64,000 nucleotides of DNA from Epithemia pelagica (GCA_946965045.2 OX337234.1:3410001-3474000), one strand, 5' to 3'. Counted from the stretch's first letter, positions 45,132-62,462 are shown. The notes: generated by a model from the sequence alone, not told the origin. A program made the numbers and translations.

Positions 45132-46103
45132 TTATTTCCGTGCGCGTTTCATTGCGCGTTCACCAGAGTCTTCGTCGTCTTCGTCGTCTTCGTCGTCGTC
45201 TTCGTTGTTGTCTTCGTCGTCGTCTTCGTCGTCGTCTTCCTCGTCAGATTCAAGCCGAGTGAGGTTAAGAGCCTTCGCGTATGCAGCCTCAACGTCAATG
45301 ATGATGGCATTATTGTTGGGTGGCGGCGCGGGGTGGAAGAAATCTACTGCAGTGATCACGATTGGATGGCTTTTTCCATTTCCGACGTTTTCGCTCTTGA
45401 TTGTCTTGTAATTCGGCCATTTCTTCCCTCTGCAGATCAAGCGATACTTGACGAAAGCAGGGGGGAATTGGGGGTAGTCGATGTTAATTTCGACGACGCA
45501 GCGAACGCCCGTGAACTCGTTTCCAGCCGCAAACCAGGCGTCGATCTTATCCTTGAGACTTTCCTTTTTCTGAGAGTACCCAACCTCAACGATAACTGAT
45601 GGGTAGTATCGACCCCTGGAATCGGCAGCATTATCCCGATGTTTACTTGGCACTTTCTTGCGGTACCGAATGCAAGCGTCCGGTTGAATCGTCTTGCCAT
45701 AGGCACTTGGACCAAAGCATGTGTCGGCACCGCTTGCTTCGATGTTATTATACTGTATGGCTTCATTACCGAGCTGTCTACTTACTTCTACGATTACGCA
45801 TTCGTGAATGGCATCGTTGAGCTCGTCAATGAAAAATTTGCGACTTGCACTATGATAGTGCCAACGGAAGGGGAGGGATTCACCGTTTTCTTTCATATAA
45901 CCCTCTACTTCCTTTTCGTCAACGTACTCCAATATGATAGGCATCGTTTTGGGTTTCTCATCTCTCAATGACCAGAGTCGTTCGAGTCGTTCGAGTCGTT
46001 CGGGAAACGTCAGGCGAGCAGAAGTCGATCTAGTTCGAACTCCTTTCTTGACTACGGCACGAACTGGAAGCGCATAGTCATCAGAACCAATCACCGTCGC
46101 CAT
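45132..46103 (-). CDS. PD-(D/E)XK restriction-endonuclease-fold protein (Uma2/DUF820-like) with acidic tail
   Basis: IQPDACIRY...YYPSVIVEVGYSQKKESLKDKIDAWF...VVEINID fits the PD..EVxxS pattern of Uma2-like nucleases. Confidence 0.7.
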   Translation of the reverse strand: MATVIGSDDYALPVRAVVKKGVRTRSTSARLTFPERLERLERLWSLRDEKPKTMPIILEYVDEKEVEGYMKENGESLPFRWHYHSASRKFFIDELNDAIHECVIVEVSRQLGNEAIQYNNIEASGADTCFGPSAYGKTIQPDACIRYRKKVPSKHRDNAADSRGRYYPSVIVEVGYSQKKESLKDKIDAWFAAGNEFTGVRCVVEINIDYPQFPPAFVKYRLICRGKKWPNYKTIKSENVGNGKSHPIVITAVDFFHPAPPPNNNAIIIDVEAAYAKALNLTRLESDEEDDDEDDDEDNNEDDDEDDEDDEDSGERAMKRARK

Positions 46104-46358
46104 TATGTCAAGTCAAGTAGTAAAGATTGTGAAAGCCGCGAAGAGACGAACTGCGAAACAATTGTTCAAAACAATTGTTCAAACACCTCCTTGGTTGAAA
46201 ATGCGCTGTTGCTGTTGCTACTGTGCGGTGCAACAAAAAATGACCAGGAAACGATGCAGAGAAGCGCGCTGAACTACGCTGAAATTTTGTGCTATCGCTT
46301 ACAGAGCGATTCCGGAGGACTGCAGAAGCTGAGAAGCTTCTCAGAACTAATCTAGTAC

Positions 46359-46603
46359 GTTTCTGTCGTGCTTTGGTCGCGGCGTGGCAGTGGATTGCAG
46401 ACAGATGCGAAGAACAATGTGATGCGACTACAACCTGCTCCCGCGGTTGAGCGACTCCCAATGTCTCTGACGCGTCAGACATTGGATTGTCCCTGCGATC
46501 TGTATGAGAGTCAAGCTCACAACTTGGAGATTTGTGAACTTGCCACTGCCATCCGAGTCGAGAGTGAGAAGGTCACGAGCAACTAGATAGTCTAAGAATC
46601 AAA
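46359..46603 (+). repeat. Split direct repeat A1 (245 bp)
   Basis: Identical by eye to 53856-54100. Confidence 0.95.
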
Positions 46604-46608
46604 CAACC

Positions 46609-49359
46609 ATGACGAAGTCTTCTACCTTTTACGATCCTACGCTCGATGAAGAGCTAGCTGATACGGCCAAGGTTTCTCAGGATCCTGTTTCTGATGATGA
46701 GAAGAAGAAACCGGCTGATCCCGACAAGAAGAAGTCTTCTCGTGCTCGTCGTCGCTCCTCCTCTGGTTCAAGTGGTGGCAACCCGCCTCCTCCCAAACCT
46801 GAAGCCCCCAAGAAGGTCTCGAACCTTTCCACGAAGCTGTCCGTTCCTGTTCCCAAGATCTCTAATCGTTCCTCGTCTGACCTCTCTTTGAACGATAAAG
46901 CCATTGATCTTTCGGATGAATCGGTTCCTGGTGGTCGTGTTGGTGGGATCAAGTTCTCTCGTCGCTCCGACGTTTTTCTTCAAACCATCCCCATCTCCGA
47001 TGACATGAAGGCTAAGCATCTCTCCATCAAGCCTGTTGATTGGTCCGATTCTTTCGCTTCCGACCTTCACCTGTTGCTGGATGCTGACCACAAGGCCTAT
47101 TGGAATGAGTTTGTTCCCTTGTTCAACTCGGTATCCGATTCTGATGGTTTCCGTCAATTCATTTCAGGTAGCACAGACAGTCTCCCTCTTGCCTTCTTAG
47201 GATTCGATCCTAAGGGAAACCTCCGTGTGTTCCATAACGTGATCCAAGCTCCTCGTACTTCGGTTGACTCTTTCTTTCGCAAGTCTCCATCGAAATTCCT
47301 TTGTTTGACCAAGAAGCCTTTCGATAGTCCCCCGAACATGTTGGATCCTCAAGAACTTGATACTTTGCTACCCTCCTTCGAAATCGATGATGTTCCTTTG
47401 GGTGCTCACATCATTGACTTTTGCGTAGTTGATGTCAACGTTCCCCAAGGAGAGTCTTCTCGCCCAGCTCACCTTCCTCCCGATTTTCGCTTTGACTCTG
47501 CAAAACTCAAAGCTTTGGTCCAACCCACGACCATCTCGTCCGAGGATGAAGCCTTTTTTGAAGAATTCTCTACGAAGAAGTTTGCGATGCTCCATCCGAG
47601 TTTTGCTGGAGTTCTCTTGAACTTCTTTGACTCCAAGAGCAAAGAGTTGGACAAATCGTTGACTTCGCCTGAAGCCGTTGCCGCGGAGTTGTTCTCCTTT
47701 GTCATCCATCGTTGGTATCTTAGCCTTTCGGATGATGATTTATCCAAGATTAAGAGTTGTCCTACAGACTCGGAGTTGATTGTTGGTTTGTTTCCGATCC
47801 TTCAGTTTCTTTGGTGCGCTTCTCATGTTAGTCATCTCTTGGAACCAATTTCCTTTGAAGTTCCCGATGACTTTGGTTTAGCGGTCTCGGCCTTCAAGAA
47901 CCATTTGTTCAAGTTCTTTCCAGACGCGATTGTTGAACCATTCAGTCTGTTGGCTCCTTCCAATGGCTTACCTCCTCTATCGTCGTCCCTCCCCAAAAAT
48001 CCTCCTTCATTGAACCCTCCCCCTTCTTTTGCTTCGGCTGCTCCTCCCTCGGTTCCTCATGTAGGAGGTGTCTCTGCTGACACCATCTATTTGACAGAGA
48101 AGATGTCGGAGAATTTCTCAGAAGCACTGGCTCGTCACTCGACGAAATTGACGAAGGACCGTGACGACGAGAAGAAAGAGATTTTTAAGAACGCAAGTCA
48201 CCTCCGCAATGGTATTGTGTTCGGTCAAGTTGGCCCTTCCAGTCTCGAACTTCCTTCAGCCCCATCCGAAACTGCAGCTGATCTATTCAAGCAGAAGAGC
48301 ACCCATACCTTGTATTCGTCCATTCAGGCGAAGATCTTTCGTAAATCGGACAATGCCGGTTATATTTTGTTCAGCCAATGTGGGATTTTGCAGAAGTATG
48401 GCGTTCGTTGGCGTGCCGAAGATCTTCCCAGCGGGTTCTCTCCTTTCAGTTTCGACCCCTACAACTGCGCAGGTCCAGACTCTCATATGGCGTTGGACCA
48501 CGACATTCACCGCGACATTTATGAGTGTTCTCTGCGACACGATAACGGTTTATCGACGAAGGATATGCGGGACATCTTTACAAATGAAAAACTTTTCTGC
48601 CCCCTCACTTGCGATGAATTCTTGATGCAGCTTCGTTCTTATTATCTCTTTGCTTCTGCGATTTGGGGGAAGGAATGCTTCATCTCTATTCAAGTTCACA
48701 AGATGATCGAGCACCACCTTCGTCATCGTCATGTATACCGGAACAGTCAGTCTTACGATCACTCATTTCTTTCCCGTGTTTTGTTTTCGATTGACAACGC
48801 CGTGCAGCGTTTTATTGAAGACAATTTGGAAATGGCTGATTGTTTGGAGGATATCAGTGGGTCAAGCCTCACTTATCATATGGACAAGCTCTGTGATAAA
48901 ATTGACTCACGAGAGGATATTTGCAGAGAACTTCCCCGCTTTGTTGACTCGACACTCAGGACGAAGTTGAAGAAGCAGAATCCTTCCAATTCTTCTTCAC
49001 CTTCTCGTGGTAATGGCTCCTCCAACTCGAGCAACAACAGTCGCAAAAGGCCTGCCGACCGTGACGCCAATGATGGTCAAGCAATTCCCTGGACGAGATT
49101 TGATTCTCCCCCCGAGTGGTGCCTTCCAACGAACCTCAAGTACTCCAAAGTTTTTCCTCGTTCCGTCTTGGATAAGATTCCCAAGTTTTCATCCAATGGT
49201 GTCGTAAAGCCCTTTTGCAACAAATTGTTTTCCATGAAGAGTTGTCGTAATGGTACGAATTGTTATTTCAGCCACGAAGACCCTCGGAACCACGGTAAAG
49301 GAGAGGCTATGACTTCCTTTTATAAGAAAGCATATGCCGACGCTTCTCGCAATGAATGA
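46609..49359 (+). CDS. gag: Ngaro ORF1 (Gag-like) with C-terminal CCCH zinc finger
   Basis: 916-aa ORF starting 5 nt after A1; C-x8-C-x5-C-x3-H (CNKLFSMKSCRNGTNCYFSH). Confidence 0.85.
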   Translation: MTKSSTFYDPTLDEELADTAKVSQDPVSDDEKKKPADPDKKKSSRARRRSSSGSSGGNPPPPKPEAPKKVSNLSTKLSVPVPKISNRSSSDLSLNDKAIDLSDESVPGGRVGGIKFSRRSDVFLQTIPISDDMKAKHLSIKPVDWSDSFASDLHLLLDADHKAYWNEFVPLFNSVSDSDGFRQFISGSTDSLPLAFLGFDPKGNLRVFHNVIQAPRTSVDSFFRKSPSKFLCLTKKPFDSPPNMLDPQELDTLLPSFEIDDVPLGAHIIDFCVVDVNVPQGESSRPAHLPPDFRFDSAKLKALVQPTTISSEDEAFFEEFSTKKFAMLHPSFAGVLLNFFDSKSKELDKSLTSPEAVAAELFSFVIHRWYLSLSDDDLSKIKSCPTDSELIVGLFPILQFLWCASHVSHLLEPISFEVPDDFGLAVSAFKNHLFKFFPDAIVEPFSLLAPSNGLPPLSSSLPKNPPSLNPPPSFASAAPPSVPHVGGVSADTIYLTEKMSENFSEALARHSTKLTKDRDDEKKEIFKNASHLRNGIVFGQVGPSSLELPSAPSETAADLFKQKSTHTLYSSIQAKIFRKSDNAGYILFSQCGILQKYGVRWRAEDLPSGFSPFSFDPYNCAGPDSHMALDHDIHRDIYECSLRHDNGLSTKDMRDIFTNEKLFCPLTCDEFLMQLRSYYLFASAIWGKECFISIQVHKMIEHHLRHRHVYRNSQSYDHSFLSRVLFSIDNAVQRFIEDNLEMADCLEDISGSSLTYHMDKLCDKIDSREDICRELPRFVDSTLRTKLKKQNPSNSSSPSRGNGSSNSSNNSRKRPADRDANDGQAIPWTRFDSPPEWCLPTNLKYSKVFPRSVLDKIPKFSSNGVVKPFCNKLFSMKSCRNGTNCYFSHEDPRNHGKGEAMTSFYKKAYADASRNE

Positions 49360-52300
49360 CATGCGATCGGGTTGATTGATGATTCGGGTAGTCCATCCCT
49401 CGTTCCTTTCAGAAAAAATGTTTCTCTTGTTTCTCACTCAGATCGTTCAATCAACCCACCCATTCCCCCCTTAGTGTCTTCTCCTTTCTTCCCCCTACCA
49501 GTTCCCAGCGTTCCAGCTCCGTTGATTCCAGGTGTTTTCTCCGACGAGCGCCTTCCATGTGACGACGATATTCATTCCAAGATCTCAAGCCCCAGAAATT
49601 CTGATTGTGTTGTTTCGTCTGAGCCCAACTCTTTGATCCAATTTGCCCCTCGAGTTGCTGTCAGAGAGTTCTCAAGTTCCCAACCTACTTCGTCCCCCAA
49701 TACTTGTGCCCCAGTTCAACTGACCTCCCTACGAAGTATTCTTAAGGCTTCTAATTCCGATTCTTGTGTCCCAGCCCCCACGACTCAACGGCCCATTTCT
49801 CCAGACAATTCGGTTGATGGTGATACACTGTACTCCCCCAACAGAAGGCTTCTTCATTCCATACAAGAATCAGAACGCGTGCCGACCTCTCCTTCTATCA
49901 TGAAGCGCGATCTATTGTCTCAAAACTCAATTGGTAATTCTCGAGCTCTTGGTGCTTCACGACCTATCATCTCCTCTGATTCGAGTGGTATTCCTCTGAG
50001 TCGTAACATCTCGCGACTTAAGAACGAAATGCTAATGGGAGAACAAATCCTAGGTGAGTCCGAGACGTCCAGTACCAATTCCGATTACTTTATTCCCTTG
50101 CATTCGGGGATAGGTCGACCCTATTTGCCGAATGATCCCCGTGAAATCTTTACCGAAAAAGTCCATAGCCCCCCTCTGCTTCCTTGGAAGATTCGCCATT
50201 CCCTTTCCTTCATCAAACGAGTCTGTGCCTCCCCAGTTCCCCCTCCCAAGCCATCTCCGTTTAAACATGAACGCTCCTACGAAGCGGCCGTCTTCAATTC
50301 CATCTTGCTTCGGAAGAACGATTATGACCTTCAGCAAATTATAGACAAGAATCCAAGGTCGACGATCAGCCCAGGTTCCGAGTTTCGGCCAGTCGAAATT
50401 CTGGAAACATTCTTAGACCAGCATCCTTTCTGGCCCAAGATTAATGACATCATGCGTCATGGAGCCTTTTACAAATTCCAATTGGTTACATCTGATGAAG
50501 ACCGTTGCCGAGAAAACGAGGCGATCTTGAACTATGGAAATCACTCTTCGGCCCAAAAACGTCCCGAAGCTCTTATCAAGGTTTCGGAGAAGGATACAGC
50601 AGCTGGTTACTCATTCCCAGTAACGTTTGATTGTTGTAAAAAGATCCGTCATGGACGGGTTGGACCTTTGGGTGTGGCCCAGCATGCTGGAATCACCGAG
50701 TCAGGTGATATCGTGATGAAAGACCGACTCGCACATGACCAATCGTTTTCTTTTGGCCACGCTCCTTCCTTGAATCAAGCGGTTGATGAATCCGAACTGA
50801 TTGACCTCGTGTTTGGCTGGTGCATTGATAGAATCATCCACCAAGTTGTTGCATTACGATTGGAATTCCCAGACAAGCGCATCCTGGTATGCAAATTTGA
50901 TTGGGGCTCCGCCTATCGACGGATTAATGGAGACGGAGTGTTGATTGCCAATACAATTACGACAGATGCTTCAGGAGAATTCGCAAATCTCTTGACGCGA
51001 CTCACATTCGGCGGTAGTCCTCATCCAGCCATGTTCAGTACAATCTCGGAAGCCACCTGTGATTTTTGCAATGATCTTGTCTCGGTCAAGCGATGGTCCC
51101 CAGCCGTCTGTAAATCGCCGCTCCAAGACAAGATGGGCCCTGTCAAACGACTCGAAGATGATATTCCGTTTGCACAGGGACGTCCGTTGGCTGTGCAAGT
51201 CCTCACGAGTCCAGAGAGTTTCGTCGACGTGTACCTCGACGACATGGTGCAACTCTTCCTGGACACAGAGGAGAATCTGCGTCGATCCCCTGGTATAGTC
51301 CCTCTTGCACTCCATCTTTTGGTCCGCCCAACGGCACCAGATGAACCCATCAAGCGTTCCGATATCCTTGCAGCCGATAAGATGATGGCTGAAGGATCCC
51401 CATCCGAAGAAATGCGTGTCCTCGGTTGGCTCATTGACACTCGTCGTTTATTGTTACGTCTGCCAAACGAGAAGTTTATCAACTGGTCCAGATTGGTGCA
51501 ATCGTTTTTGGACCCACAGCGGAAGAATTTCAAATTCACCGAGATTGAGAGTTTGATCGGCAAGATGGACAACGCATGCAAAGGCATACCTCTTGCCCGG
51601 TACTTCATCAACCGTATTCGAGCATATAAAGACAAGTTGATATCCGACCATGCTGCCAAGCAGGACCCCGAAGCTCCTGCCTTCGTTAAGAGACCGAAAC
51701 CTTGGTACCGTTACAAGATGCCAGAAAATTTGAAACCCGATCTCCAAGTTTGGTTGAAATTGTTGAATCGCGCCAACGAAGGTATCAGTTTGAACCTGTT
51801 AACTTGTCGCCAACCAACGAACGTTGCGTTAGCCGACTCCTGCCCATTCGGCATGGGCGGTTTCTCTTTACGCACAGGACGAGCATGGCACGTCCGACTC
51901 GACCCTGCCGTAGTCGCGATGGCCTCCAATGCACAAGATATGGAGGACGATCCAAACTTAGGCTCCCCTGACTTGAAACTCTCCAACAACCTTTTTGAGT
52001 TCATCTGTCAGGTTGTAACGATTTGGTTAGACTGCATCGATGGTGTTCTCGGCAATGACGACTGCATTCTGGCCCTCTCGGATAGCAGCTCGGCCACGGG
52101 ATGGATGCACCGAGCATCCTATGGAACAAACAAACCCCACCACCGCAAGGTTTCGGAAAAGTTAGTCGACCTGTCCTTGCAACATCGATTTGCACTCCAT
52201 CCAGAACACGTACCGGGAAAGGCGAATCAAGTCACCGACGTTCTTTCGAGGACGTTTGATTGTTGCGATATAGAACTAACACAACTCATCCATTCTCGTT

Positions 52301-52716
52301 TCCCCGAACAGATTCCGAGCAATTTCAAGATCTTACCACTACCGACCGAAATACAATCATGGATCTCATCAGTCGCTCCGCAACTGCCCGTATCTTCTAC
52401 GGCAGAGTCGAATCAACAAGTGAGAGTCAAGACCGGACATGGCGACGATGGAACATCCACCTACGATTGTTCAAACTCACCGGCGACCCCTTTTTGGACG
52501 GAATCAAGACCCTCAGTACCCGAGCCCTCATCGTCAGCACTTTCTTGCAAAGACTACGGGACGGGTATTACAGTCGCAACCATGAGGGAGACCTTCGGGC
52601 GAGCACTGTTGAAAAAGCCACTGGCGAGTTGGCAGCGAAGTTTCGGTATCACGACAGGGCGAGCCCCTGCCACGTCCCGGGATGCAACCGGCTTCATCCC
52701 ATTGTTGAATCATTGA
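49360..52716 (+). CDS. pol: Ngaro ORF2: reverse transcriptase plus RNase H, in frame with ORF1 after a single TGA
   Basis: KFDWGSAYRRI, LTFGGSPHPAMF, YLDD; RNase H ADSCPFGMGG, NNLFE, SDSSSATGW, HVPGKANQVTDVLSR. First in-frame ATG only at 49900. Confidence 0.9.
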   Translation, partial: HAIGLIDDSGSPSLVPFRKNVSLVSHSDRSINPPIPPLVSSPFFPLPVPSVPAPLIPGVFSDERLPCDDDIHSKISSPRNSDCVVSSEPNSLIQFAPRVAVREFSSSQPTSSPNTCAPVQLTSLRSILKASNSDSCVPAPTTQRPISPDNSVDGDTLYSPNRRLLHSIQESERVPTSPSIMKRDLLSQNSIGNSRALGASRPIISSDSSGIPLSRNISRLKNEMLMGEQILGESETSSTNSDYFIPLHSGIGRPYLPNDPREIFTEKVHSPPLLPWKIRHSLSFIKRVCASPVPPPKPSPFKHERSYEAAVFNSILLRKNDYDLQQIIDKNPRSTISPGSEFRPVEILETFLDQHPFWPKINDIMRHGAFYKFQLVTSDEDRCRENEAILNYGNHSSAQKRPEALIKVSEKDTAAGYSFPVTFDCCKKIRHGRVGPLGVAQHAGITESGDIVMKDRLAHDQSFSFGHAPSLNQAVDESELIDLVFGWCIDRIIHQVVALRLEFPDKRILVCKFDWGSAYRRINGDGVLIANTITTDASGEFANLLTRLTFGGSPHPAMFSTISEATCDFCNDLVSVKRWSPAVCKSPLQDKMGPVKRLEDDIPFAQGRPLAVQVLTSPESFVDVYLDDMVQLFLDTEENLRRSPGIVPLALHLLVRPTAPDEPIKRSDILAADKMMAEGSPSEEMRVLGWLIDTRRLLLRLPNEKFINWSRLVQSFLDPQRKNFKFTEIESLIGKMDNACKGIPLARYFINRIRAYKDKLISDHAAKQDPEAPAFVKRPKPWYRYKMPENLKPDLQVWLKLLNRANEGISLNLLTCRQPTNVALADSCPFGMGGFSLRTGRAWHVRLDPAVVAMASNAQDMEDDPNLGSPDLKLSNNLFEFICQVVTIWLDCIDGVLGNDDCILALSDSSSATGWMHRASYGTNKPHHRKVSEKLVDLSLQHRFALHPEHVPGKANQVTDVLSRTFDCCDIELTQLIHSRFPEQIPSNFKILPLPTEIQSWISSVAPQLPVSSTAESNQQVRVKTGHGDDGTSTYDCSNSPATPFWTESRPSVPEPSSSALSCKDYGTGITVATMRETFGRALLKKPLASWQRSFGITTGRAPATSRDATGFIPLLNH

Positions 52717-53672
52717 AGAAGGCCTGGAAGAACCTCGATCCAGACGAGGCACGACAAAAAGCAATATCACCAAGACACCTCCGACATGCATGGATGGAAG
52801 CAACGAAATCCGTCAACGGCCACCGCGATCTTGTCTCCTTTCGCGCTTGCGCCGTTGAATTGTCTTGTGGTGGATACTTTTATGGGATGCGCAGTTGCGA
52901 ATACCTCACAGTCAAATACAGAGGTAAAACGAAACTGTTGACGATAGGAAACATCAAGTTCATGGTCGATGATGAACGACGAACGGAGATCGACCCTTGT
53001 GACCCAGACTTCGCCTCCAAGGCCATGTTCGTCTCAATAACCTTTATTTCTCAGAAGAACGGCGAGAAGAATCAGACGCGGACCCAAAGCAAAACCAACG
53101 ATACAATCCTTTGTCCGGTCCGATTGTGGGGGCGCATCATTCGACGTATCCTTTTTTACCGCCCCGATGCTGCACCCGACACGCCGGTTAATTGCTGGTT
53201 TGACCCAGACATAGCCAAACGCGGAGAAACACCCACACCGAGATTCATCCGATCGGAGGACACCATCAAGATCTTGCGATCCTCTTGTGCAACCGGAGGA
53301 GGATTTGAAAAATTCGGATACCGGCCCATGGAAATCGGAAACCATTCCATCCGATCGGGCGCCGCGATGGCCTTGTTCCTCGCCAAAGCATCAGTATTGA
53401 AGATTATGATCCTTGGGCGATGGTCGTCCGCTGCCTTTCTCCGATATATCCGTCCACAGGTGATGGAGTGGACGGCAGGAATGTCAACTCAAATGCTGAC
53501 AACACTCGACTTCAGGCACGTCGACCCTTCCACCGCCAACAACCGACCAACGGGCGACGCCGAGTCCATTCAAGCCAACCTTGAAGCCGCTATCGAATCC
53601 CCGGAAGAGATCAAGTTCACTGGCTCCGTCCCCTTCCAGCATTTTGACACGCAACTGAATCTGGAATTCTGA
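52260..53672 (+). CDS. Ngaro ORF3: tyrosine recombinase, overlapping the 3' end of ORF2 in another frame
   Basis: Catalytic R (GMRSCEY), K (SQKNG), H-x-x-R (NHSIRSG), W (GRWSS), Y (FLRYIR). First ATG at 52359. Confidence 0.92.
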   Translation: MLRYRTNTTHPFSFPRTDSEQFQDLTTTDRNTIMDLISRSATARIFYGRVESTSESQDRTWRRWNIHLRLFKLTGDPFLDGIKTLSTRALIVSTFLQRLRDGYYSRNHEGDLRASTVEKATGELAAKFRYHDRASPCHVPGCNRLHPIVESLKKAWKNLDPDEARQKAISPRHLRHAWMEATKSVNGHRDLVSFRACAVELSCGGYFYGMRSCEYLTVKYRGKTKLLTIGNIKFMVDDERRTEIDPCDPDFASKAMFVSITFISQKNGEKNQTRTQSKTNDTILCPVRLWGRIIRRILFYRPDAAPDTPVNCWFDPDIAKRGETPTPRFIRSEDTIKILRSSCATGGGFEKFGYRPMEIGNHSIRSGAAMALFLAKASVLKIMILGRWSSAAFLRYIRPQVMEWTAGMSTQMLTTLDFRHVDPSTANNRPTGDAESIQANLEAAIESPEEIKFTGSVPFQHFDTQLNLEF

Positions 53673-53711
53673 TGGCGTATCCAAATTGATGGAAGGTGCT
53701 CTTCAATGGTA

Positions 53712-54264
53712 CTGGGAGCCAGCACGGTTTCCCTTGGGCCTAGCGGCACACGCGTCTACTCCCCTAGCGTGTCCTAGACTGTCAAGACGAGAGAGACCTT
53801 CGCAACGACAGAACGCCGCGACTCTGCAGGATGACGTCGCTGGGTTGTCCCCTCGGTTTCTGTCGTGCTTTGGTCGCGGCGTGGCAGTGGATTGCAGACA
53901 GATGCGAAGAACAATGTGATGCGACTACAACCTGCTCCCGCGGTTGAGCGACTCCCAATGTCTCTGACGCGTCAGACATTGGATTGTCCCTGCGATCTGT
54001 ATGAGAGTCAAGCTCACAACTTGGAGATTTGTGAACTTGCCACTGCCATCCGAGTCGAGAGTGAGAAGGTCACGAGCAACTAGATAGTCTAAGAATCAAA
54101 AAATAACCCCCTACCCGCCCCTGGGAGCCAGCACGGTTTCCCTTGGGCCTAGCGGCACACGCGTCTACTCCCCTAGCGTGTCCTAGACTGTCAAGACGAG
54201 AGAGACCTTCGCAACGACAGAACGCCGCGACTCTGCAGGATGACGTCGCTGGGTTGTCCCCTCG
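53712..54264 (+). repeat. B1 (53712-53855), A2 (53856-54100), 20-bp spacer, B2 (54121-54264)
   Basis: B copies of 144 bp identical by eye; the B1|A2 abutment reproduces the predicted circle junction cctcg|gtttc. Confidence 0.95.
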
Positions 54265-54470
54265 CGGCCTGGAACGATTGCTTGGAATGTGGTTGCGCGC
54301 GATGGTAACATCGTTCGTACAAAGACTACCACAGTAGTGTTGCAGACCGAAGACTCCAGAATCAATCCTGCGGGATTCATCCACTCTTTCTTGTTGCAAG
54401 AAAAGTGTTTCTGCTGCCGCCACAATCATTGTAGATGAGTAGCATTGAAATAGAACGTAGATAGGAGGTA

Positions 54471-55085
54471 AGGGCTGGGTAAGCCGATCCATGTTCGGCT
54501 AAGTAGGTTCAGTACGAAAGCTACGTAGCGTACATAAAGTCCCATAGTACACGTCATACCTGAAATGGTGGGAAGTCCGAAAAAATGCAAAAACACTCCA
54601 CGATGACGGCGAGATCCGTTGATGCCGCATGCATTCACTCATGCATCGCATCAACATCCGACCACTGTGAGTTGTTTGCGTTTGCTAGTATTACTGTGTT
54701 CTACAGCTACAGAAGATTTGTCGCGTTGGATCAAAAGTTATACTCATTTTTCTGTGGTGCTGTAATCTAAAAACCTTCCTAACTCATTCATTTCTCAACG
54801 GTGACTGAATCAAATTGAACCCATAGTTGCTCTAGTATTAAAGAGTATTATTCTAAAAGTGATTCAGTTAGGCTCAATTATCCATGAAGTTATTGCCATG
54901 GGGGTGATTTCTTCGACCATCGTCGAGTGATGGTTTCCGGACTGCATTGTGTCTCGTGGCAGCAAGTTTTCGATTTGCGACTCGGTGTGACCATCCGCCC
55001 CACTTGTTACAGTCATGAAAATAGTACTACGTAGCTTAATGTACTGAGCCTACTTAGCCGAACATGGATCGGCTTACCCAGCCCT
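54471..55085. mobile_element. MITE (~615 bp) with 45-bp TIRs, flanked by TA
   Basis: 54471-54515 and 55041-55085 are inverted repeats with 1 mismatch; TA at 54469-70 and 55086-87; no coding capacity. Confidence 0.8.
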
Positions 55086-55243
55086 TACATAGGGCTCATT
55101 TTACCCAAACAACTACCGCAACTTGGGGTAAAATGACTGGATCACTCGGAAGCTCGTGAACCAAGTCACGAGTTGAAAATCAAGAATTTTTCAAAACAGT
55201 CCTGGCACCCAAGGCTCGTGAGCCAATCCGCTGGGTGTGCTTC

Positions 55244-55355
55244 CAAAATAGCGTGGTGTGGATGTTACAAAAACATAAAGAGTGACTACTAGGCACCTCC
55301 AACTTAGAGGAGCTATCTATCGCTAAACTTTCGCTCATAAACGCGACCCTTTCTC
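55244..55355 (-). repeat. 3' LTR
   Basis: Identical to 61400-61511; preceded on the element strand by purine-rich GAGGGGACC. Confidence 0.92.
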
Positions 55356-55496
55356 GGTCCCCTCGTGATCTAACTATCGTAATCATGCATTTTCTTCTTC
55401 TCCTTCTATCCATTCCAACTGGACCTGCTTAAAGATCAGTTCATCATCTGACTGCAGGACGTACCCAAACCTGTTTTCCAACAGTGGGAAACGCAC

Positions 55497-58400
55497 TTAG
55501 TACAAAATCATCTCCGCTAGTCGCTTCCTTTCTGTGCCGGTCTGAACTTTAGTCAAGAGATCGGCAAGATTTGACTTTGATGGCTCATATGCAATTCGAC
55601 ATACTCCGTTTGCGACATTTTCTCTTACGAAATGATAGGCGATTGCATTCGATTTCTTGCGGAGAATGGATTCTGGTCTGGTACTGTTCTGTACCACTGA
55701 CATATTGTCGACTCTGATGTGTGCATGACCGTCCAGAGGCACGCCCAACATCCTCAATTTGTATCTCAAACCCTTGGTCATCTCGATACCCACTTTCAGG
55801 GCCATGAACTCAGAACCAAATGTCGAAGTCTCGACACTTGTCTGCTTCTTTGAATACCAATTTACTGGTGAACGATTTAAGAAGATCAAGACTCCCGTCC
55901 TGGAACGACGAGTCACCAAATCACCCGCGTGATCAGAATCAACGAAGACAGTGATTTGCACCGGTTTACCCAATGGTTCAGGTGCATCGGGTGGGATTTC
56001 TTCCTTTGCATCGGGATAGAATCCTGACCAATCCGCCAACGGCTCCTCCCCATGGACAATATATGATGGATCCAACACCAATCTCGATCTGTCATATTGA
56101 TTGATGTAAGCGAAAACATGAAGGAGAGCATGTACATGTCCTTCTCTTGGACCAGCCAAATAAGCAGCCAACATCGAGACCTCTGTTGTTATATCGATCC
56201 TTCCGAGTTCCACCAACCATCGGAGAACTCCAATCTGTTGTTGAAAGAAAGATTGCCATTCTTGGTCACAGTAGGACGACGTGTCCAATTCAGGTCTGTA
56301 TCCAGATGGGAGTACACCTGCCACCCTTGTCTTGAGCATCATGTCCCTTTCCTCCAGCCAAATCTTTACATTACGGATGGCTTCACTGGCATATTTCTTT
56401 GAGCTCAATGCCCAACACCGTTTAGATACGTCGTTGTCGATGTCAAAAGTCTGAATTTCGTTTCCAAGGTAAATCTTGGGTGGACCTATTGAGTCCGGTT
56501 TCAATAGATAATGCTGGTCAAGCATGTTGAGGATTTCACGTCCCCTGTGCGAGATTACAAGTACATCGTCAATATAAATGAACACGAGTTCATAATATAA
56601 AGAACCATCTTGTTTCTTTGCTGGTCGCAAATACACGTCGGGATCAGCCTTGCAGGGCTTGAATCCCAACGACTCTTGTAGAGTTGTGGACAGGTGCTCT
56701 CTCCAGGCGAATGCACTGGTTTTGAGGCCATAGAGCGCCTTTGTTATTACTGCGTATCGTCCTTCGTATTCCTTTCCGAATTCGAGACCGCAGAGTGTAC
56801 AAATCCTTTCGTGACATGGAGCATTGAGGTAAGCCCCGGCTATATCTGCGGCCGTCACGTCCACTCCATTCAATGCTGCCAACATGAACCCAATTCTCAC
56901 ACTTTCCCTGGAAACAACGCTCGCATAGGTCGGTGTTTCAGGCTCTCCTGTCTTGTGTCCACCTGCAACATACCTCGCCTTTCGCGTAAAGTCCATCTTT
57001 ACGTCAAAGACGATATGGCAGGGGATGACCTTGTGACCAATGGGCTGCGGCATTCCCTCATCCAGTATCTTTACTGCTGGGAATATCTTTGACATTTCTA
57101 GTTGCAATGCCTTAGCCCAGAAATCAGTACCGGTCTCTCGGTCAATCTCCAACGCCCTTTCTACCGTTTTAGGCAGTTCGATACCGTATTTTTGTGATTT
57201 GCGAAAATATCGAGTCGATTTGGTCGCCTTGATCAGCCGATCCCGTCGCTTCAGAGCGAAAGCGACCCACCATGCAAATGCTGGTTCCTTGTCTATAAGA
57301 TTGGCTACAGCATATTCCGCGACTTCCAAGGGATTGGATTCCTTGAGATCTTGCAACTTCTCCCAAGACGTTGACCCGTCTTTCCATTCGACACACAATG
57401 ACCAACCTCTGGTTGTTCTCTTCTTATGCTCTCTCCCGTTCCAATGGAAGGTACCATCTGAGATAGAGATGGCCGATGCGTCTTTCTTGTGATCAACGAT
57501 ACTGCTCAGGAGCCGATACTTATTGCCCTCTTCGTCTAGTTGTTCGTAGATGTTTTCCGCGATAAGGTTTGCCGCGTAAGACTCCACGTGACCATCTTGA
57601 AATTCGACCTCGTACATGGTCGTGTCTAGAATAGGGTTCGTTGAAGGTCGTCCAATGAGGTTGCCGTCTGCATTTCTTTTCCTTCGCTTGACTTGCCCCT
57701 GACGCAACGATCCTCCCAAAGGTAGCATGACTTTTGCTGCAATGAGCTTGTCATAGGAATCTGTCTTGTATTGGTCTAGGTCAGGCTTCCGAACATCTTC
57801 CTGTTCATCATCCTCATATGCGTCATAAAACGGAGTATCCGTACCATCTTCATCGGGTTCTCCTTGTTCTATCGGCATTCCTTCAAATTTTGCACCCAAT
57901 ACGGCCTTTAAATTAGCGTCAAATTGTTCCCTCTGTGCTGTGAAGGTTTCATCGTGTGATTTCTCCGAAGACAGGGGCCAAACCGACGTCCTGTATACAA
58001 TTTTCCCTTTGTCAGTTAGGATTTTCGAGCTCATGGCTTGACCGACACTTCTACTAGGTCCGAGCCATCGTCCCAACTTTCGACCTTCAAACCCAGGATT
58101 GGAGTACCAAACCGGGTCGTACCACCGATGTTCCACTAGGTGGGAAATATCAGGTGTGTCCCCTGTCAATGTAGTTAGGGGTGGACCGGTATTGAATGGA
58201 CTAGTCGACAAGACTGTGTGAGATCTCCTTGCTGCCATTAGTTCAAGGCAGTGATCCCAGAGGACTGAGGGACAATTAGTCCTTCTCATTTCACGGCGAT
58301 ACATCCTTTTTAGTTCCCAAATATTGGCTTCGGCCAGATTCTGGTTAGGAGTGTATGCCTCAATTGGTTTAATCCGGCAGCTGAACTTGTGCGCAGTCTT

Positions 58401-59474
58401 CCTGAAGTTACCGCTTGTTAACTCAGGTGCATTGTCTGGTATGACACTATTAAAGATGCCATAGTCACTGAATACTCTTTCAAGTGTCTTATGTGCATCC
58501 TTCTTTCGTTGCATGGGATAGAACTCTACCCATCCAAAATCTGTCGCGTACACTTGCCCGCATGTGTTCTGACCAAGTGACTTGACGTCTGAGAAGAGGG
58601 TATCTGTGTAGACGTCCGCTCTTAATCGTCTATGCTTCAACTGATACGCTGTATGGCGTAATCTCTTGCTTCCAATGGAGTCAGTAAAGTCTCGTACTCC
58701 CAATTGCGTTGTGGCCGAACAAGTCTTCTCAGCCAATGGGATACCTATTCCCCATCTTCTTGATAGAGTCACAGGGTCCACTGTCCCCTTTCGACGATGC
58801 CTCAAATCAGCAATCGTCCTTGAGTTTACCCGAACCATTTGGGCCATCCTTTGATGCAAGTCTCTCGATTCTTTCTTTCGAACTGCATCTGTTTCTAAAT
58901 CGACACGGAGTTTCCTTTCGTCGGCGTCTGCCAAGTCATTCGGATCCCACTCCGGTGTGTCGTTAGTCATATGGATCCTGTTGCTCGGATCTATATTCTT
59001 GATTTCATCCCAAGTTGGTTTCCTTACTGTGAAGGAGCTCATTACACCAACCAAGTCGAATGGGATGACAAGATGATCGCTTTCATCTGAGAAAGGAGCT
59101 ATGATCGAATGCGAGTGACTGTTCCTGTCCTCACTCTTGATATATTTTAGAGGAACGTCATTCACTTTGACTCCTGCTTCTCTCATCTGGTTGGGGTTTA
59201 ACAAGCATTTATTCATCATCGGTAAATGGAGGGCCTGATGAAAATATAGGAGATATGTTTCATTTGATTTGGGGTCGTCATAGGCGACTACTCCATTGAT
59301 GATTGGAGTTTCTTTAATGCTCCCAAGTGAATTCGTAAAACCACTAACTTCTGCTTTGCCTGTCGTATATAGGACTTGACAGACATCTCCAAGGCAGCAA
59401 GTGTCCGCGTGACTGTCCAATTCACACGTTGCCGTCATAACCGTTATTTCACTTGCTACCGTGCTGACTGTATG
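55497..59474 (-). CDS. pol: Copia Pol (protease, integrase, RT, RNase H), in frame with gag after a single TGA
   Basis: PR ELDSHADTC; IN YTD..PDNA..LAE; RT KARYVAGGH, ADIAGAYLNA, KALYGLK, YIDD; RH FVDSDHAGDLVTRRSRTG, STFGSE, VDN, NLADLLTK. Confidence 0.93.
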   Translation of the reverse strand, partial: HTVSTVASEITVMTATCELDSHADTCCLGDVCQVLYTTGKAEVSGFTNSLGSIKETPIINGVVAYDDPKSNETYLLYFHQALHLPMMNKCLLNPNQMREAGVKVNDVPLKYIKSEDRNSHSHSIIAPFSDESDHLVIPFDLVGVMSSFTVRKPTWDEIKNIDPSNRIHMTNDTPEWDPNDLADADERKLRVDLETDAVRKKESRDLHQRMAQMVRVNSRTIADLRHRRKGTVDPVTLSRRWGIGIPLAEKTCSATTQLGVRDFTDSIGSKRLRHTAYQLKHRRLRADVYTDTLFSDVKSLGQNTCGQVYATDFGWVEFYPMQRKKDAHKTLERVFSDYGIFNSVIPDNAPELTSGNFRKTAHKFSCRIKPIEAYTPNQNLAEANIWELKRMYRREMRRTNCPSVLWDHCLELMAARRSHTVLSTSPFNTGPPLTTLTGDTPDISHLVEHRWYDPVWYSNPGFEGRKLGRWLGPSRSVGQAMSSKILTDKGKIVYRTSVWPLSSEKSHDETFTAQREQFDANLKAVLGAKFEGMPIEQGEPDEDGTDTPFYDAYEDDEQEDVRKPDLDQYKTDSYDKLIAAKVMLPLGGSLRQGQVKRRKRNADGNLIGRPSTNPILDTTMYEVEFQDGHVESYAANLIAENIYEQLDEEGNKYRLLSSIVDHKKDASAISISDGTFHWNGREHKKRTTRGWSLCVEWKDGSTSWEKLQDLKESNPLEVAEYAVANLIDKEPAFAWWVAFALKRRDRLIKATKSTRYFRKSQKYGIELPKTVERALEIDRETGTDFWAKALQLEMSKIFPAVKILDEGMPQPIGHKVIPCHIVFDVKMDFTRKARYVAGGHKTGEPETPTYASVVSRESVRIGFMLAALNGVDVTAADIAGAYLNAPCHERICTLCGLEFGKEYEGRYAVITKALYGLKTSAFAWREHLSTTLQESLGFKPCKADPDVYLRPAKKQDGSLYYELVFIYIDDVLVISHRGREILNMLDQHYLLKPDSIGPPKIYLGNEIQTFDIDNDVSKRCWALSSKKYASEAIRNVKIWLEERDMMLKTRVAGVLPSGYRPELDTSSYCDQEWQSFFQQQIGVLRWLVELGRIDITTEVSMLAAYLAGPREGHVHALLHVFAYINQYDRSRLVLDPSYIVHGEEPLADWSGFYPDAKEEIPPDAPEPLGKPVQITVFVDSDHAGDLVTRRSRTGVLIFLNRSPVNWYSKKQTSVETSTFGSEFMALKVGIEMTKGLRYKLRMLGVPLDGHAHIRVDNMSVVQNSTRPESILRKKSNAIAYHFVRENVANGVCRIAYEPSKSNLADLLTKVQTGTERKRLAEMILY

Positions 59475-60959
59475 TCAGACTCGGTCATTTCGCTTCTTTC
59501 TTTGGCTCATGATAGCACCAATGCCAGCTTCTCTATCTTCCATGGAGTCGTCTCCGTTACTTGTCAAATCTTCTGTCGTGTCTGTCGCCGACGATGAACC
59601 GTCATTGTTCTTCCTTTTCTTCTTGTTCGAGTTTACTCCTGATGCAGTACGTTTCTTAGTGCTGCTATTTTGCTTGTCTCGCGAGTCTCGAACCAATTGT
59701 TGTTGCTCAGGTGTGAGCTTTACCCATAACTTGTAAGGATAGTACTTGTTAGGGTTGTTTGGATCAAATTTGGTCGGGGTATTCTTATTGTTGCCTTTGT
59801 TGTTTTTCTTGTTGCCGCTTGATTGGACAGCGGAAATCCTGGCCCTTCTCGTTGTAGCGCTGTAGGAAACCTTGTTGTCTAGTACTTCTGCGAGATAACC
59901 TGATGCCACTTCAAACGAGATCCGGAGATTTGGGGATGCTAGGATCTGATTCTTGGCACTCTCAAGTCGCGTATCATGAATACCCGTTAGAAGAATACGG
60001 ATCTTCCTTTCTTCACTCACGAATTCTCCTGTGGATTCGAGATCAGAAAAGGCCTTCTGCAAGGACTCAATATATTTCTCGTAGGTAAAGTTACGTTTTG
60101 AGCCGTCGTAATAGTTTGTCTCCAACGTTTGGTCTGCCTTCGCTCGCAAACGAGTTTGATAGGCATCTCCAAAGTAGTGATTTCTGAGGGCTCTGTAGGC
60201 TCCTCTGCCATCCCTGTTACGGCTGTACATCTGTACCCAGCCCCATCCCGGTCCATCATGGGTTACGTGTCTGACTGCGTCCCATACTGCTTCATTGTCG
60301 GTAAGGGCTGTTGGTCCTGTGTGCGGTGCTCGTCGTATAAGCTCTTGGATAATACTTGGCCGACCATAGCCCGGATCAAGATTCAAAGGTGGTACTGTGT
60401 TGAGTGGACGAGTGTAAGCGGCCAAAGGAATGCCAGTTACTCCTCTTTTTCTTTCGAAGTAATCGTCCAAATCTTCCAGTACGGTACGGATATTTTCAAC
60501 TGCAGTCAGCTTCTTGGGTAGTTCAATGTCGTTGTTCTTGTACTCGTCTTCACTTTCCTTGAATCGATATAGGTCTTGAAGATTTGGTAGCGATGAGGAA
60601 GGTGCAGCAGGGTCAAAAGAGCGTGAGACTTTCATCAAATGATGAATGTAGTATCTCATCATCTTCAATCTCTTCTCGATTACATGGCCCACTAACACTC
60701 CTGGATTCGTAATGGTAGGGGCTATGCCGACAACCGGGTTCAACGGGTCAAAGGCTGGATTCGGAACGGTTCCTCCTGGCTTTCTTGCATTATTGCAAAT
60801 TTCGGCGACGTCTTCTTCCGTCAAGCCGAGGAAGTCACTCGCTGACAGTAAGCCCTGAGCATGCAGGGCATCGCGAACTGTTTGCTGTTGAATCTGTAAC
60901 GTATTCAACCAGTAGTCATCTAGCTCTTGGAGCAGAGCTGCGGCATCGGGTGCTGCCAT
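59475..60959 (-). CDS. gag: Copia Gag
   Basis: 494-aa ORF with RDGRGAYRAL..HYFG, YDGSKRNFTYEKY and a basic tail, upstream of pol within the LTRs. Confidence 0.85.
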   Translation of the reverse strand: MAAPDAAALLQELDDYWLNTLQIQQQTVRDALHAQGLLSASDFLGLTEEDVAEICNNARKPGGTVPNPAFDPLNPVVGIAPTITNPGVLVGHVIEKRLKMMRYYIHHLMKVSRSFDPAAPSSSLPNLQDLYRFKESEDEYKNNDIELPKKLTAVENIRTVLEDLDDYFERKRGVTGIPLAAYTRPLNTVPPLNLDPGYGRPSIIQELIRRAPHTGPTALTDNEAVWDAVRHVTHDGPGWGWVQMYSRNRDGRGAYRALRNHYFGDAYQTRLRAKADQTLETNYYDGSKRNFTYEKYIESLQKAFSDLESTGEFVSEERKIRILLTGIHDTRLESAKNQILASPNLRISFEVASGYLAEVLDNKVSYSATTRRARISAVQSSGNKKNNKGNNKNTPTKFDPNNPNKYYPYKLWVKLTPEQQQLVRDSRDKQNSSTKKRTASGVNSNKKKRKNNDGSSSATDTTEDLTSNGDDSMEDREAGIGAIMSQRKKRNDRV

Positions 60960-61379
60960 GGTTCAAAAAGATCTGTTTTGATGGACTCTCTCAGACTTTC
61001 CAGTATTCGGAACTGTGTGTGTCATGCGCACCTTACCCTCTTTCATTCATTGAAGTAGATACATGAGCGATCACCAAGGTAGAGAGCGTGCACAGCTGCA
61101 TTATCGTCCCGCGCCACATAAGTGGATAAAACGCATGGTCGCATGGCAGGCTTTTTCTTTTCAACGGCAAAGAACAGGCGCGTCCGCCATTGCCCAGAGT
61201 GTGCGCAGTAGCAGACCACACCCCTCACTAGTCCGGTCTGGCTCCGTTGCAAGTCAGATATTCAACGAGACTAGATCCTTGGGCGGATCATATGGACCTA
61301 CTTAGTCCGATCCGGATATTTCTTGACCTTCCCAGGCCATTGTGCCCTTAGCTCCTCTTCTTCTTCCTCTTCAGCTCAG

Positions 61380-61399
61380 AGTCATTGGGTCTGATAAAC
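61380..61399 (-). promoter_or_regulatory. Putative primer-binding site (half-tRNA type)
   Basis: Abuts the 5' LTR; the + strand reads GTCATTGGGT-CTGATAA-ACC, resembling a tRNA-Ile anticodon arm. Confidence 0.45.
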
Positions 61400-61511
61400 C
61401 AAAATAGCGTGGTGTGGATGTTACAAAAACATAAAGAGTGACTACTAGGCACCTCCAACTTAGAGGAGCTATCTATCGCTAAACTTTCGCTCATAAACGC
61501 GACCCTTTCTC
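61400..61511 (-). repeat. 5' LTR
   Basis: Identical to 55244-55355. Confidence 0.92.
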
Positions 61512-61516
61512 GCTTC

Positions 61517-62300
61517 AACACGATAAAAATTCAGGAGAGCGTCACTCAATTCCTGAAATTCTTTCAGCCCGCTCCTGAATTTCTGCCCAAGTCCTGAATT
61601 TCCCATTGCGAGAGCGCATGGTTCGGTCGTTTTGCAGAGTGTGATGAGATCCTTGATTTGTGCTGTGCACCTGATGTCATTGCTGGCACTCACGCTTTGC
61701 CGTTGCAATGACATTCTCACAAGCAATCTGTTGGAAAAGCAAACTCTGGAGGGTGCCACATGAGCCCAATTTGAACCCAACAGACTTTCCAAAGATCAAC
61801 CCTGCAACCTGTGGGCAGCTCTGGTGCAACTGGGGATTGACATAGTTTGACTGAGGGCACTGCAAAAAGCAAGGCAAGCTGGCATCAGCAAGAAGGACAG
61901 CACCATCCACTGCGACAGATGTGTGGAAGGCCCAGCAACCGGTGGCTTGTGAGCTTTGTGTTGGAGAGTTTTGCACCCATGGGATTTGGAATGTTGCTCC
62001 TGGGATCACAGATGAATGGCTGAGTTTGGAGGTGACCACGGCAATCAGCGCTTCATTTGGTTCAGGAGTTGGCATTGCTCTCACCAAGCCTCAACTTTGA
62101 GGTTGCCTTGGTGGAGGCGCATGTGAGTTTGTGCTCCCAGGCGTGAGGAGCCATGGACAAAGACTACAATGATTGCATCTGATCTCATTGAAGCATCATT
62201 GGCATCATGACCTCCTTGGCCAGAAGACACCTTGACCGCCAAGACAGTGGGTTAGTTCCCGCAGGACTGTGACTGCACTTATCGAAAAAACGAGATCAAG
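61517..62300 (+). pseudogene. Decayed tyrosine-recombinase (Crypton-like) transposon relic, split by the copia insertion (left part ~55131-55243)
   Basis: Residual peptides HSL..G.A/ARQAGISKKD/DRCVE/VACELCVG/PGITDEWL; the frame runs across the empty site (W-V-C-F-N-T) once the copia and one GCTTC are removed; extreme TpA depletion. Confidence 0.5.
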
Positions 62301-62462
62301 AAAATTATGAACGTCAAAATGCATCATGGTCATCCGTGCTTTACACGACAAACGCACGCGCGGGGTCGGACAGCCGATGATGCCGGCGACGTTGTGAGTA
62401 CAATAATGTCAAAAATACACGTACGTTTTAAAAAAAATGAATCCGCGAATGAAAGCGTCTTA

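Follow-up and report, generated by a model that had tools for sequence, protein, structure and literature searches.

An in-frame UGA-C at the gag/pol boundary of two retrotransposons

The window analyzed here, a stretch of 64,000 nucleotides of Epithemia pelagica DNA (GCA_946965045.2 OX337234.1:3410001-3474000), contains two unrelated, intact and adjacent retrotransposons, a Ngaro-type tyrosine-recombinase element (46359-54264, + strand) and a Ty1/copia long terminal repeat (LTR) element (55243-61512, - strand). In each of them the frame that runs from gag into pol is interrupted by a single TGA, and comparison with relatives indicates that this stop is an old, selected feature of both families. 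Taken as a whole, the data are probably best explained by leaky readthrough of a UGA-C stop, which would yield Gag-Pol in both elements and would be reinforced in the Ngaro element by a long-range RNA stem. It is likely that the two unrelated element types employ the same strategy independently, that is, by convergent programmed readthrough.

The Ngaro junction reads gaa-TGA-cat-gcg on the + strand, and its TGA (49357-49359) was the only stop besides the terminal one in a frame of 2036 codons (46609-52716). Independent DNA contigs from three public runs bridged the site and showed no difference at the TGA. On the - strand, the copia junction reads gtc-TGA-cat-aca, with the TGA (59477-59475) as the sole internal stop in a frame of 1821 codons. 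An earlier note on this DNA, made from the sequence alone, had placed a single TGA at each Gag/Pol boundary, at 49357 and 59477, and both placements were borne out. The candidate readthrough site, taken as the in-frame UGA together with a conserved C at position +4, spans 49357-49360 (+) in the Ngaro element, on the basis of family conservation and the DNA contigs, and 59474-59477 (-) in the copia element, on the basis of family conservation. Each element has one internal in-frame TGA as against 41-81 in the other frames, and because the other two frames hold so many, TGA is an ordinary stop in this organism. Reassignment of UGA was rejected, in-frame TGA being absent elsewhere in both elements. 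The terminal stops of the elements are TGA-A, TGA-T and TAA-G.

Downstream of each stop lies a predicted stem, and both were present as the earlier note had described them. In the Ngaro element the 5' arm GGGTTGATTGA (49369-49379, +) starts after a spacer of 9 nt (49360-49368, +) and pairs with the 3' arm TCAATCAACCC (49447-49457, +) to close a pyrimidine-rich loop of 67 nt; the 11 perfect Watson-Crick pairs appeared in the minimum free energy (MFE) and centroid folds alike. In the copia element the 5' arm GGTAGCAAGTG (59450-59460, -) begins after a spacer of 14 nt and pairs over 11 bp, including one G.U, with the 3' arm CACTTGCTGCC (59393-59403, -), closing a loop of 46 nt; this stem is clade-specific, and its 3' arm lies within codons of the conserved protease motif ...DSHADTCCLG. 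When the two window helices were compared with random anchors in the same loci, the Ngaro helix was reached in 0.5% of cases and the copia helix in 0.3% (p = 0.003). The fold energy of the whole region gave z = -1.2 for Ngaro and z = -3.3 for copia.

Conservation of the stop and of its context

Relatives of both elements were gathered from the E. pelagica genome itself (60.5 Mb, 23 contigs) by DNA and protein search; a Pfam search of the genome gave 898 RVT_2 and 149 RVT_1 candidates. The Ngaro set comprised 29 own-genome loci in 18 lineages (<=90% identity), with the gag C-terminus 30-58% identical to that of the window element, and the copia set comprised 30 own-genome loci with a gag C-terminus 51-100% identical to the window's.

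A single in-frame TGA was present at the end of gag in all 29 Ngaro loci and was followed by C in 26 of them, the next codon in those +4 C loci being CAT, CAG, CAA, CTG, CGG, CGA or CGC. Past the stop, the frame remained open for hundreds of codons in most loci. The same in-frame TGA behavior was seen in a relative from another ENA assembly (85% identical), and two metagenome scans with Ngaro gag alignments found no relatives. Contigs of environmental tyrosine-recombinase relatives were too short to reach the junction, and three environmental lineages were reached via open reading frame (ORF) 2. Among the relatives obtained in this way, L082 (ORF2 48% identical) and L083/84 (ORF2 38% identical) kept the in-frame TGA, beyond which the frame was open for 1200 and 1249 codons, respectively.

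In the copia family, TGA-C stood at exactly the same codon in 27 of the 30 own-genome loci, with CAT, CAC, CAA, CGG or CGA as the next codon. Two loci of one lineage carried TGA-T three codons upstream, and the remainder of the 30 were visibly broken copies. Five environmental contigs (L074-L078; JGI metagenomes, Logan assembly), whose gag was 36-43% identical, all had an in-frame TGA-C, in the contexts TGA-CTAG (twice), TGA-CAC and TGA-CTC. After the stop the frame was open for 1339-1343 codons in L074 and L077, met a second stop at about 850 codons in L075/76, and ran to the contig edge in L078. Across both families the stop was always TGA, never TAA or TAG.

These comparisons bear on the shared UGA-CAU signal that had been read from the two window copies. 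With CAT, CAC, CAA, CAG, CGG, CGA, CGC, CTG, CTA or CTC as the next codon, only the C at +4 was kept, so that claim did not hold; judged from the alignments, the +4 C is the only conserved neighboring base, and the CAU common to both window copies is a coincidence.

In principle, each stop could be a random nonsense mutation that arose independently in a dead copy, with a stem formed by chance, and a general prior that most transposon copies decay speaks for this. The chance of it is next to nil. Lineages with as little as 30-36% protein identity kept the stop at the same codon, and it recurred in metagenomes and other assemblies as well as in the genome itself; it was always TGA; and the terminal repeats of both window elements are 100% identical, as the earlier note had also recorded. 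Because they are conserved at the same spot across deeply diverged relatives of both elements, the stops are not accidents, and random nonsense mutation, which the earlier note had itself argued against, was refuted by the family comparisons. For annotation, this means that an in-frame TGA-C at gag/pol should not be scored as a disabling mutation in either family; copies that combine one such stop with identical repeats may well be active.

A helix held at a fixed distance from the Ngaro stop

Of all the results, the most valuable is the Ngaro stem, with its covariation and its migration together with the stop. Ungapped helices at a spacer of 8-9 nt recurred across the Ngaro lineages with entirely different arm sequences and loops of 43-90 nt, and the spacer was 8-9 nt in the own-genome lineages with a clear helix. 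The window pair GGGTTGATTGA and TCAATCAACCC is replaced, for example, by GAGTCTTCGG and CCGAAGACTC in lineage L061, by GGGTCATCGT and ACGATGACCC in L062, by GGATCGTCGAA and TTCGGCGATCC in L064, and by CGGACTGA and TCAGTCCG in L069 (5' and 3' arm, respectively). The pairing was assessed, with bulges allowed, by running RNAduplex on positions +12 to +25 against the downstream 90 nt, with random anchors in the same locus as the control. The test gave p < 0.05 in 17 of the 18 Ngaro lineages, for a Fisher combined p of 7e-18.

The sequence alignment of the closer lineages (subgroup A) was inspected as well. A 7-bp core was paired in nearly all cells, and five of the pairs showed double changes. The covariation score was 0.117 as against 0.065 in shuffled alignments, a value reached by 1 of 500 shuffles, and it fell to 0.013-0.066 when the register was slid. 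The conserved L-I-V residues come immediately after the stop in a second subgroup (B); in subgroup A the stop is four codons upstream of them. The 5' arm was shifted correspondingly, from the G-L-I codons in subgroup A to the E-S-S codons in subgroup B, and the 9-nt spacing was kept. The stem moved with the stop, and it is the distance to the stop that is conserved and not the position in the protein. The comparative evidence shows that the Ngaro stem is real. Global fold energy downstream of the stop was uninformative as a test of structure in both families, and the folding and alignment data together indicate that the Ngaro signal is a positioned helix and not general structure.

A stem located 6-9 nt past a UGA also resembles the SEPN1 redefinition element (PMC3159437), and selenocysteine recoding, with the stem acting like an element of the SEPN1 type, was considered on this ground. 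It is very improbable: Rfam, searched permissively (E <= 1) with both strands of 45500-62500, gave no selenocysteine insertion sequence (SECIS) or other family, the unconserved Gag-Pol linker offers no plausible role for a selenocysteine, and the position of the stop shifts between lineages.

With many lineages in one genome, unrelated stem sequences and a fixed distance of 8-9 nt, the Ngaro family amounts to a clean natural experiment, and it supplies natural wild-type and compensatory variants for reporter assays.

Two of the environmental Ngaro relatives showed other arrangements next to the stop. In L082 (2748-2800) the TGA has a U at +4, and a local 11-bp hairpin with a 13-nt loop starts 6 nt past the stop; the 5' arm of this hairpin still reads GGGGTTGATTG. 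In L083 (4659-4795) the TGA likewise has a U at +4, and a multi-helix long-range structure begins 8 nt past the stop.

Coding constraint past the stop

For the first 100 codons that follow the stop, eleven Ngaro pairs gave ratios of nonsynonymous to synonymous substitution rates (dN/dS) of 0.18-0.52. For the first 19 such codons, the ratio was computable in six of eight copia pairs and came to 0.14-0.61. These values indicate purifying selection, in the gag frame, on the codons directly past the stop. The first in-frame Met past the stop was found anywhere from codon 31 to codon 286 in Ngaro and from codon 5 to codon 149 in copia, and because its position wanders there is no conserved restart codon. 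Termination followed by reinitiation was rejected for want of a conserved AUG. If ribosomes did not pass the stop, nothing would keep pol in the frame of gag with precisely one stop in between.

Proposed mechanism and relation to known readthrough signals

In the mechanism proposed here, Gag would be made in both elements by termination at the weak UGA-C stop, and a near-cognate tRNA would let a minority of ribosomes decode the UGA and go on, without a change of frame, to give a Gag-Pol fusion. As in gammaretroviruses, readthrough would keep Pol low relative to Gag. In the Ngaro element the weak context would be reinforced by an RNA stem of ~7-16 bp closing a loop of 43-90 nt, and the start of this stem, 8-9 nt past the stop, would lie roughly where the mRNA enters the channel of the ribosome. 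In the copia element the conserved signal would be the UGA-C itself. That ribosomes do read through these stops, how efficiently they do so, and which amino acid they insert, we infer from sequence.

The closest published counterpart is the Type II cassette (Firth et al. 2011, PMC3159437), which consists of UGA-C and a stem of 10-12 bp located 7-12 nt (mostly 8-9) past the stop and closing a long loop. It is carried by alphaviruses (Venezuelan equine encephalitis virus, VEEV; Sindbis virus, SINV), a coltivirus, and tobra-, peclu-, furo- and pomoviruses (PMC3159437), and its stem raises readthrough 3- to 14-fold (PMC3159437). In VEEV the spacer is 8-9 nt, the stem 11-12 bp and the loop 101 nt; readthrough is up to 10-fold higher with the stem, and the loop is dispensable (PMC3159437). 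The Ngaro family shares with the cassette the UGA-C, the spacing, the stem, a poorly conserved loop in coding sequence and the compensatory changes. In both families a single in-frame UGA separates an upstream ORF from a downstream ORF that is conserved as coding. All sequence-level features of Type II were found in the Ngaro family, and the copia family has the context alone, its spacer being 14 nt. Two of the environmental copia relatives, with UGA-CUA-G, carry the UGA-CUA context of Type II. Unlike the published carriers, which are RNA viruses, the Ngaro carrier is a DNA-integrated tyrosine-recombinase retrotransposon, known here from sequence; its loops measure 43-90 nt as against ~100-150, and +5/+6 are not restricted to CGG or CUA. 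The cassette of UGA-C and extended stem is thus extended from RNA viruses to a tyrosine-recombinase retrotransposon, in diatoms. On this comparison the signal is a known kind of recoding signal and reveals no new mechanism.

Gamma- and epsilonretroviruses likewise have an in-frame stop just before the protease, at gag-pro, which sets the Gag:Gag-Pol ratio, with RNA structure ~8 nt downstream. In Moloney murine leukemia virus (MoMLV; Type III) this signal consists of UAG-G, a purine-rich spacer and a compact H-type pseudoknot (PMC13517186). Here, in contrast, UGA-C serves as the stop, accompanied in Ngaro by a simple long-range stem and in copia by no conserved structure. Assignment to the MoMLV type was rejected, the stop being always UGA followed by C, rarely T; no pseudoknot search was made. 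In the literature searched, no description of readthrough turned up for DIRS or Ngaro elements, nor for transposons of diatoms. For the diatom CoDi copia elements (Maumus et al. 2009, PMC2806351) a likeness is mentioned in passing, as a criterion of intactness, and the accessible portion of that paper describes no stop identity, context, conservation or RNA structure (PMC2806351).

The occurrence of TGA-C in two unrelated element orders of one genome, and in the environmental copia relatives as well (hosts not identified), would also fit a mechanism specific to the host lineage, as the earlier note had proposed. Unusually leaky UGA-C termination, a suppressor tRNA or a release-factor variant would then be exploited by several transposon orders and perhaps by host genes. 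This is unlikely. Every feature seen is generic to eukaryotes, UGA-C being a classic leaky context and the spacer and stem being as in the alphaviruses and plant viruses that carry the published Type II cassette (PMC3159437), and nothing that could be examined supported the proposal; nor was any tRNA gene, or a third retroelement, found in the 64-kb window. It is similarly improbable that UGA-C readthrough is the dominant Gag:Pol control across several transposon orders here, owing to unusually inefficient UGA-C termination, a host trait such as a peculiarity of the release factor or the tRNA pool. If such host-wide weakness were true, host genes would be expected to avoid UGA-C or to exploit it for conserved C-terminal extensions.

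Observations that weigh against readthrough, and the status of the copia stem

A number of observations count against stem-reinforced readthrough of UGA-C in both elements. The base at +4 is T in a few lineages (L056, L069/70, L040/41, L082, L083/84). Fold energy downstream of the Ngaro stop was unexceptional (z = -1.2; Fisher p = 0.30), and duplex tests on the environmental Ngaro relatives gave p = 0.06, 0.31 and 0.06, which is suggestive only. In the environmental Ngaro relative L086 gag and ORF2 lie in different frames. For copia, the duplex was significant in one of seven lineages, and covariation in the family alignment was no better than in column shuffles, 130 of 500 of which reached the score. 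Within the clade of the window copy, the arms varied at 1 of 22 sites and the surroundings at 15 of 78 (p = 0.18). Finally, the gag-UGA-pol junction of the Candida albicans copia element Tca2, taken alone, gave no readthrough in a yeast reporter (PMC2194720).

The copia results divide the earlier claim of a long-range stem shared by both elements. It stood for the Ngaro family, where the helix covaries (1 of 500 shuffles reaching the score); the copia 11-bp helix was limited to the window's own young clade, with copies 93-97% identical, and did not covary. On these alignments the copia stem is not established and the family-wide signal is UGA-C alone. One interpretation is that the copia stem is a recent reinforcement or a by-product, which may or may not add to readthrough.

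Because the Tca2 junction failed in the Saccharomyces cerevisiae reporter, an in-frame UGA is no proof of canonical readthrough. Tca2 (pCal) resembles the element described here: it belongs to Ty1/copia, a single in-frame UGA separates its gag from its pol, and a structure is predicted downstream. The copia family of the window differs from it in having deep comparative support for UGA-C, and the mechanism of bypass in Tca2 is unexplained (PMC2194720). By a non-canonical bypass of the kind proposed for Tca2, the UGA would merely end gag, and pol would be expressed through a promoter inside the junction, a subgenomic RNA, or internal initiation or reinitiation. We regard this as doubtful for the elements studied here. 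With independent initiation, pol would not have to share the frame of gag or to follow exactly one stop, yet it does both in nearly all lineages. There is also no conserved AUG past the stop, the codons immediately after it are under purifying selection in the gag frame, and the Ngaro stem holds a fixed distance to the stop and not to a protein motif.

Two side observations concern the junctions discussed above. The region 4660-5010 of L086 holds a gag-like ORF that ends in TGA-CGG, with ORF2 in another frame, and may represent a damaged copy or a different recoding strategy. The copia stop itself lies within a small hairpin, CUGAC-N5-GUCAG (59464-59478, -), with the UGA in the 5' arm. This hairpin was kept in most own-genome copia lineages (87.7% of cells paired), but only by way of conserved Val/Ile-Ser codons and with no double changes; distant copia relatives lack the stop hairpin or have the stop placed in a loop.

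Structure and coding capacity of the Ngaro-type element

The element at 46359-54264 (+) was delimited by its split direct repeats, arranged as A1-[ORFs]-B1-A2-B2, and by its ORF layout. A1 (46359-46606) and A2 (53856-54103) are 248 nt long and 100% identical, and so are B1 (53712-53855) and B2 (54121-54264), with a length of 144 nt. In the published definition, Ngaro elements have the arrangement A1-[ORFs]-B1A2B2, with a Gag-like ORF1, an ORF2 encoding reverse transcriptase (RT) and ribonuclease H (RNase H), and an ORF3 encoding a tyrosine recombinase with HxxR and a catalytic Tyr (PMC8547959). The assignment to Ngaro is made because the tyrosine recombinase and the repeat architecture fit this definition (PMC8547959). 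The Ngaro elements (DIRS order) of the stramenopile Cafeteria burkhardae have the same split repeats and the same roles for ORF1, ORF2 and ORF3, and the paper that describes them makes no mention of a recoding signal between ORF1 and ORF2 (PMC8547959).

ORF1 (46609-49356, +) encodes a Gag-like protein of 916 aa with at least 70 relatives in the genome. Near its C-terminus is a C-x8-C-x5-C-x3-H finger (49231-49299), in which the C, C, C and H were invariant or near-invariant across 15 lineages; it replaces the CCHC knuckle usual in Gag, and Pfam zf-CCCH matches to it were weak.

ORF2 (49360-52716, +) continues in the ORF1 frame for 1118 codons, with a Ser/Pro-rich linker followed by a region with a YLDD motif. 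Pfam and PDB sequence searches with ORF2 gave no match, and a single-sequence AlphaFold model had a pLDDT (predicted local distance difference test) of 33 and was unusable as a fold. The nearest named Atlas clusters were RVT_1 / RT_RNaseH (0.92). On the basis of the YLDD motif and these RVT_1-bearing neighbors, ORF2 is a probable RT/RNase H; it differs from the Ngaro superfamily in that the RT is too divergent for Pfam RVT_1. The ORF2 family (P0198-P0317) had hundreds of relatives in JGI, ENA, NCBI and Logan at 33-65% identity. These relatives carried no precomputed Pfam domain, so the RT lineage escapes RVT_1.

ORF3 (52260-53672, +; 470 aa) overlaps the end of ORF2 in another frame. Single-sequence Pfam and PDB searches gave no match, and no ORF matched the rve integrase in Pfam. 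The ORF3 family comprised 2222 relatives at E <= 0.001, with the consensus R..HSxRSG..GRWSS..Y. A profile of the family run against the PDB had Cre recombinase as its sole match, a weak one (E = 0.06); PF00589 was detected in 5 of 31 ORF3 relatives, and the Atlas neighbors were Phage_integrase clusters. These matches and the consensus identify ORF3 as a tyrosine recombinase. The protein-atlas neighbors of one protein of the element were diatom proteins.

An internally deleted copy or allele of the element was also observed. DNA contigs from two public runs joined 48975 to 52424 with two extra letters (TC). The deleted form, whose depth was roughly half that of the full form, lacks the end of gag, the junction and most of ORF2.

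Structure and coding capacity of the copia element

The copia element is bounded by 114-nt LTRs (55243-55356 and 61399-61512) that are 100% identical. Its gag (59478-60959, -) is an open frame of 494 aa, relatives of which, with lengths of 471-545 aa, were present in ENA, JGI and Logan. The pol region (55497-59474, -) has 1325 codons and terminates at TAA-G. The protease motif begins about 20 codons past the stop and is followed, in the same pol frame, by a presumed integrase region, the RT, with a match to RVT_2 (PF07727, E = 2.6e-17), and a presumed RNase H. The element is placed in Ty1/copia by its LTRs and by a single pol frame in which the protease motif precedes an RT of the RVT_2 type. 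The protease motif itself (~59400-59420, -) reads ELDSHADTC, with D-S-H in place of the usual D-S/T-G, and this variant was kept in all own-genome copia lineages as well as in the environmental relatives L074-L077.

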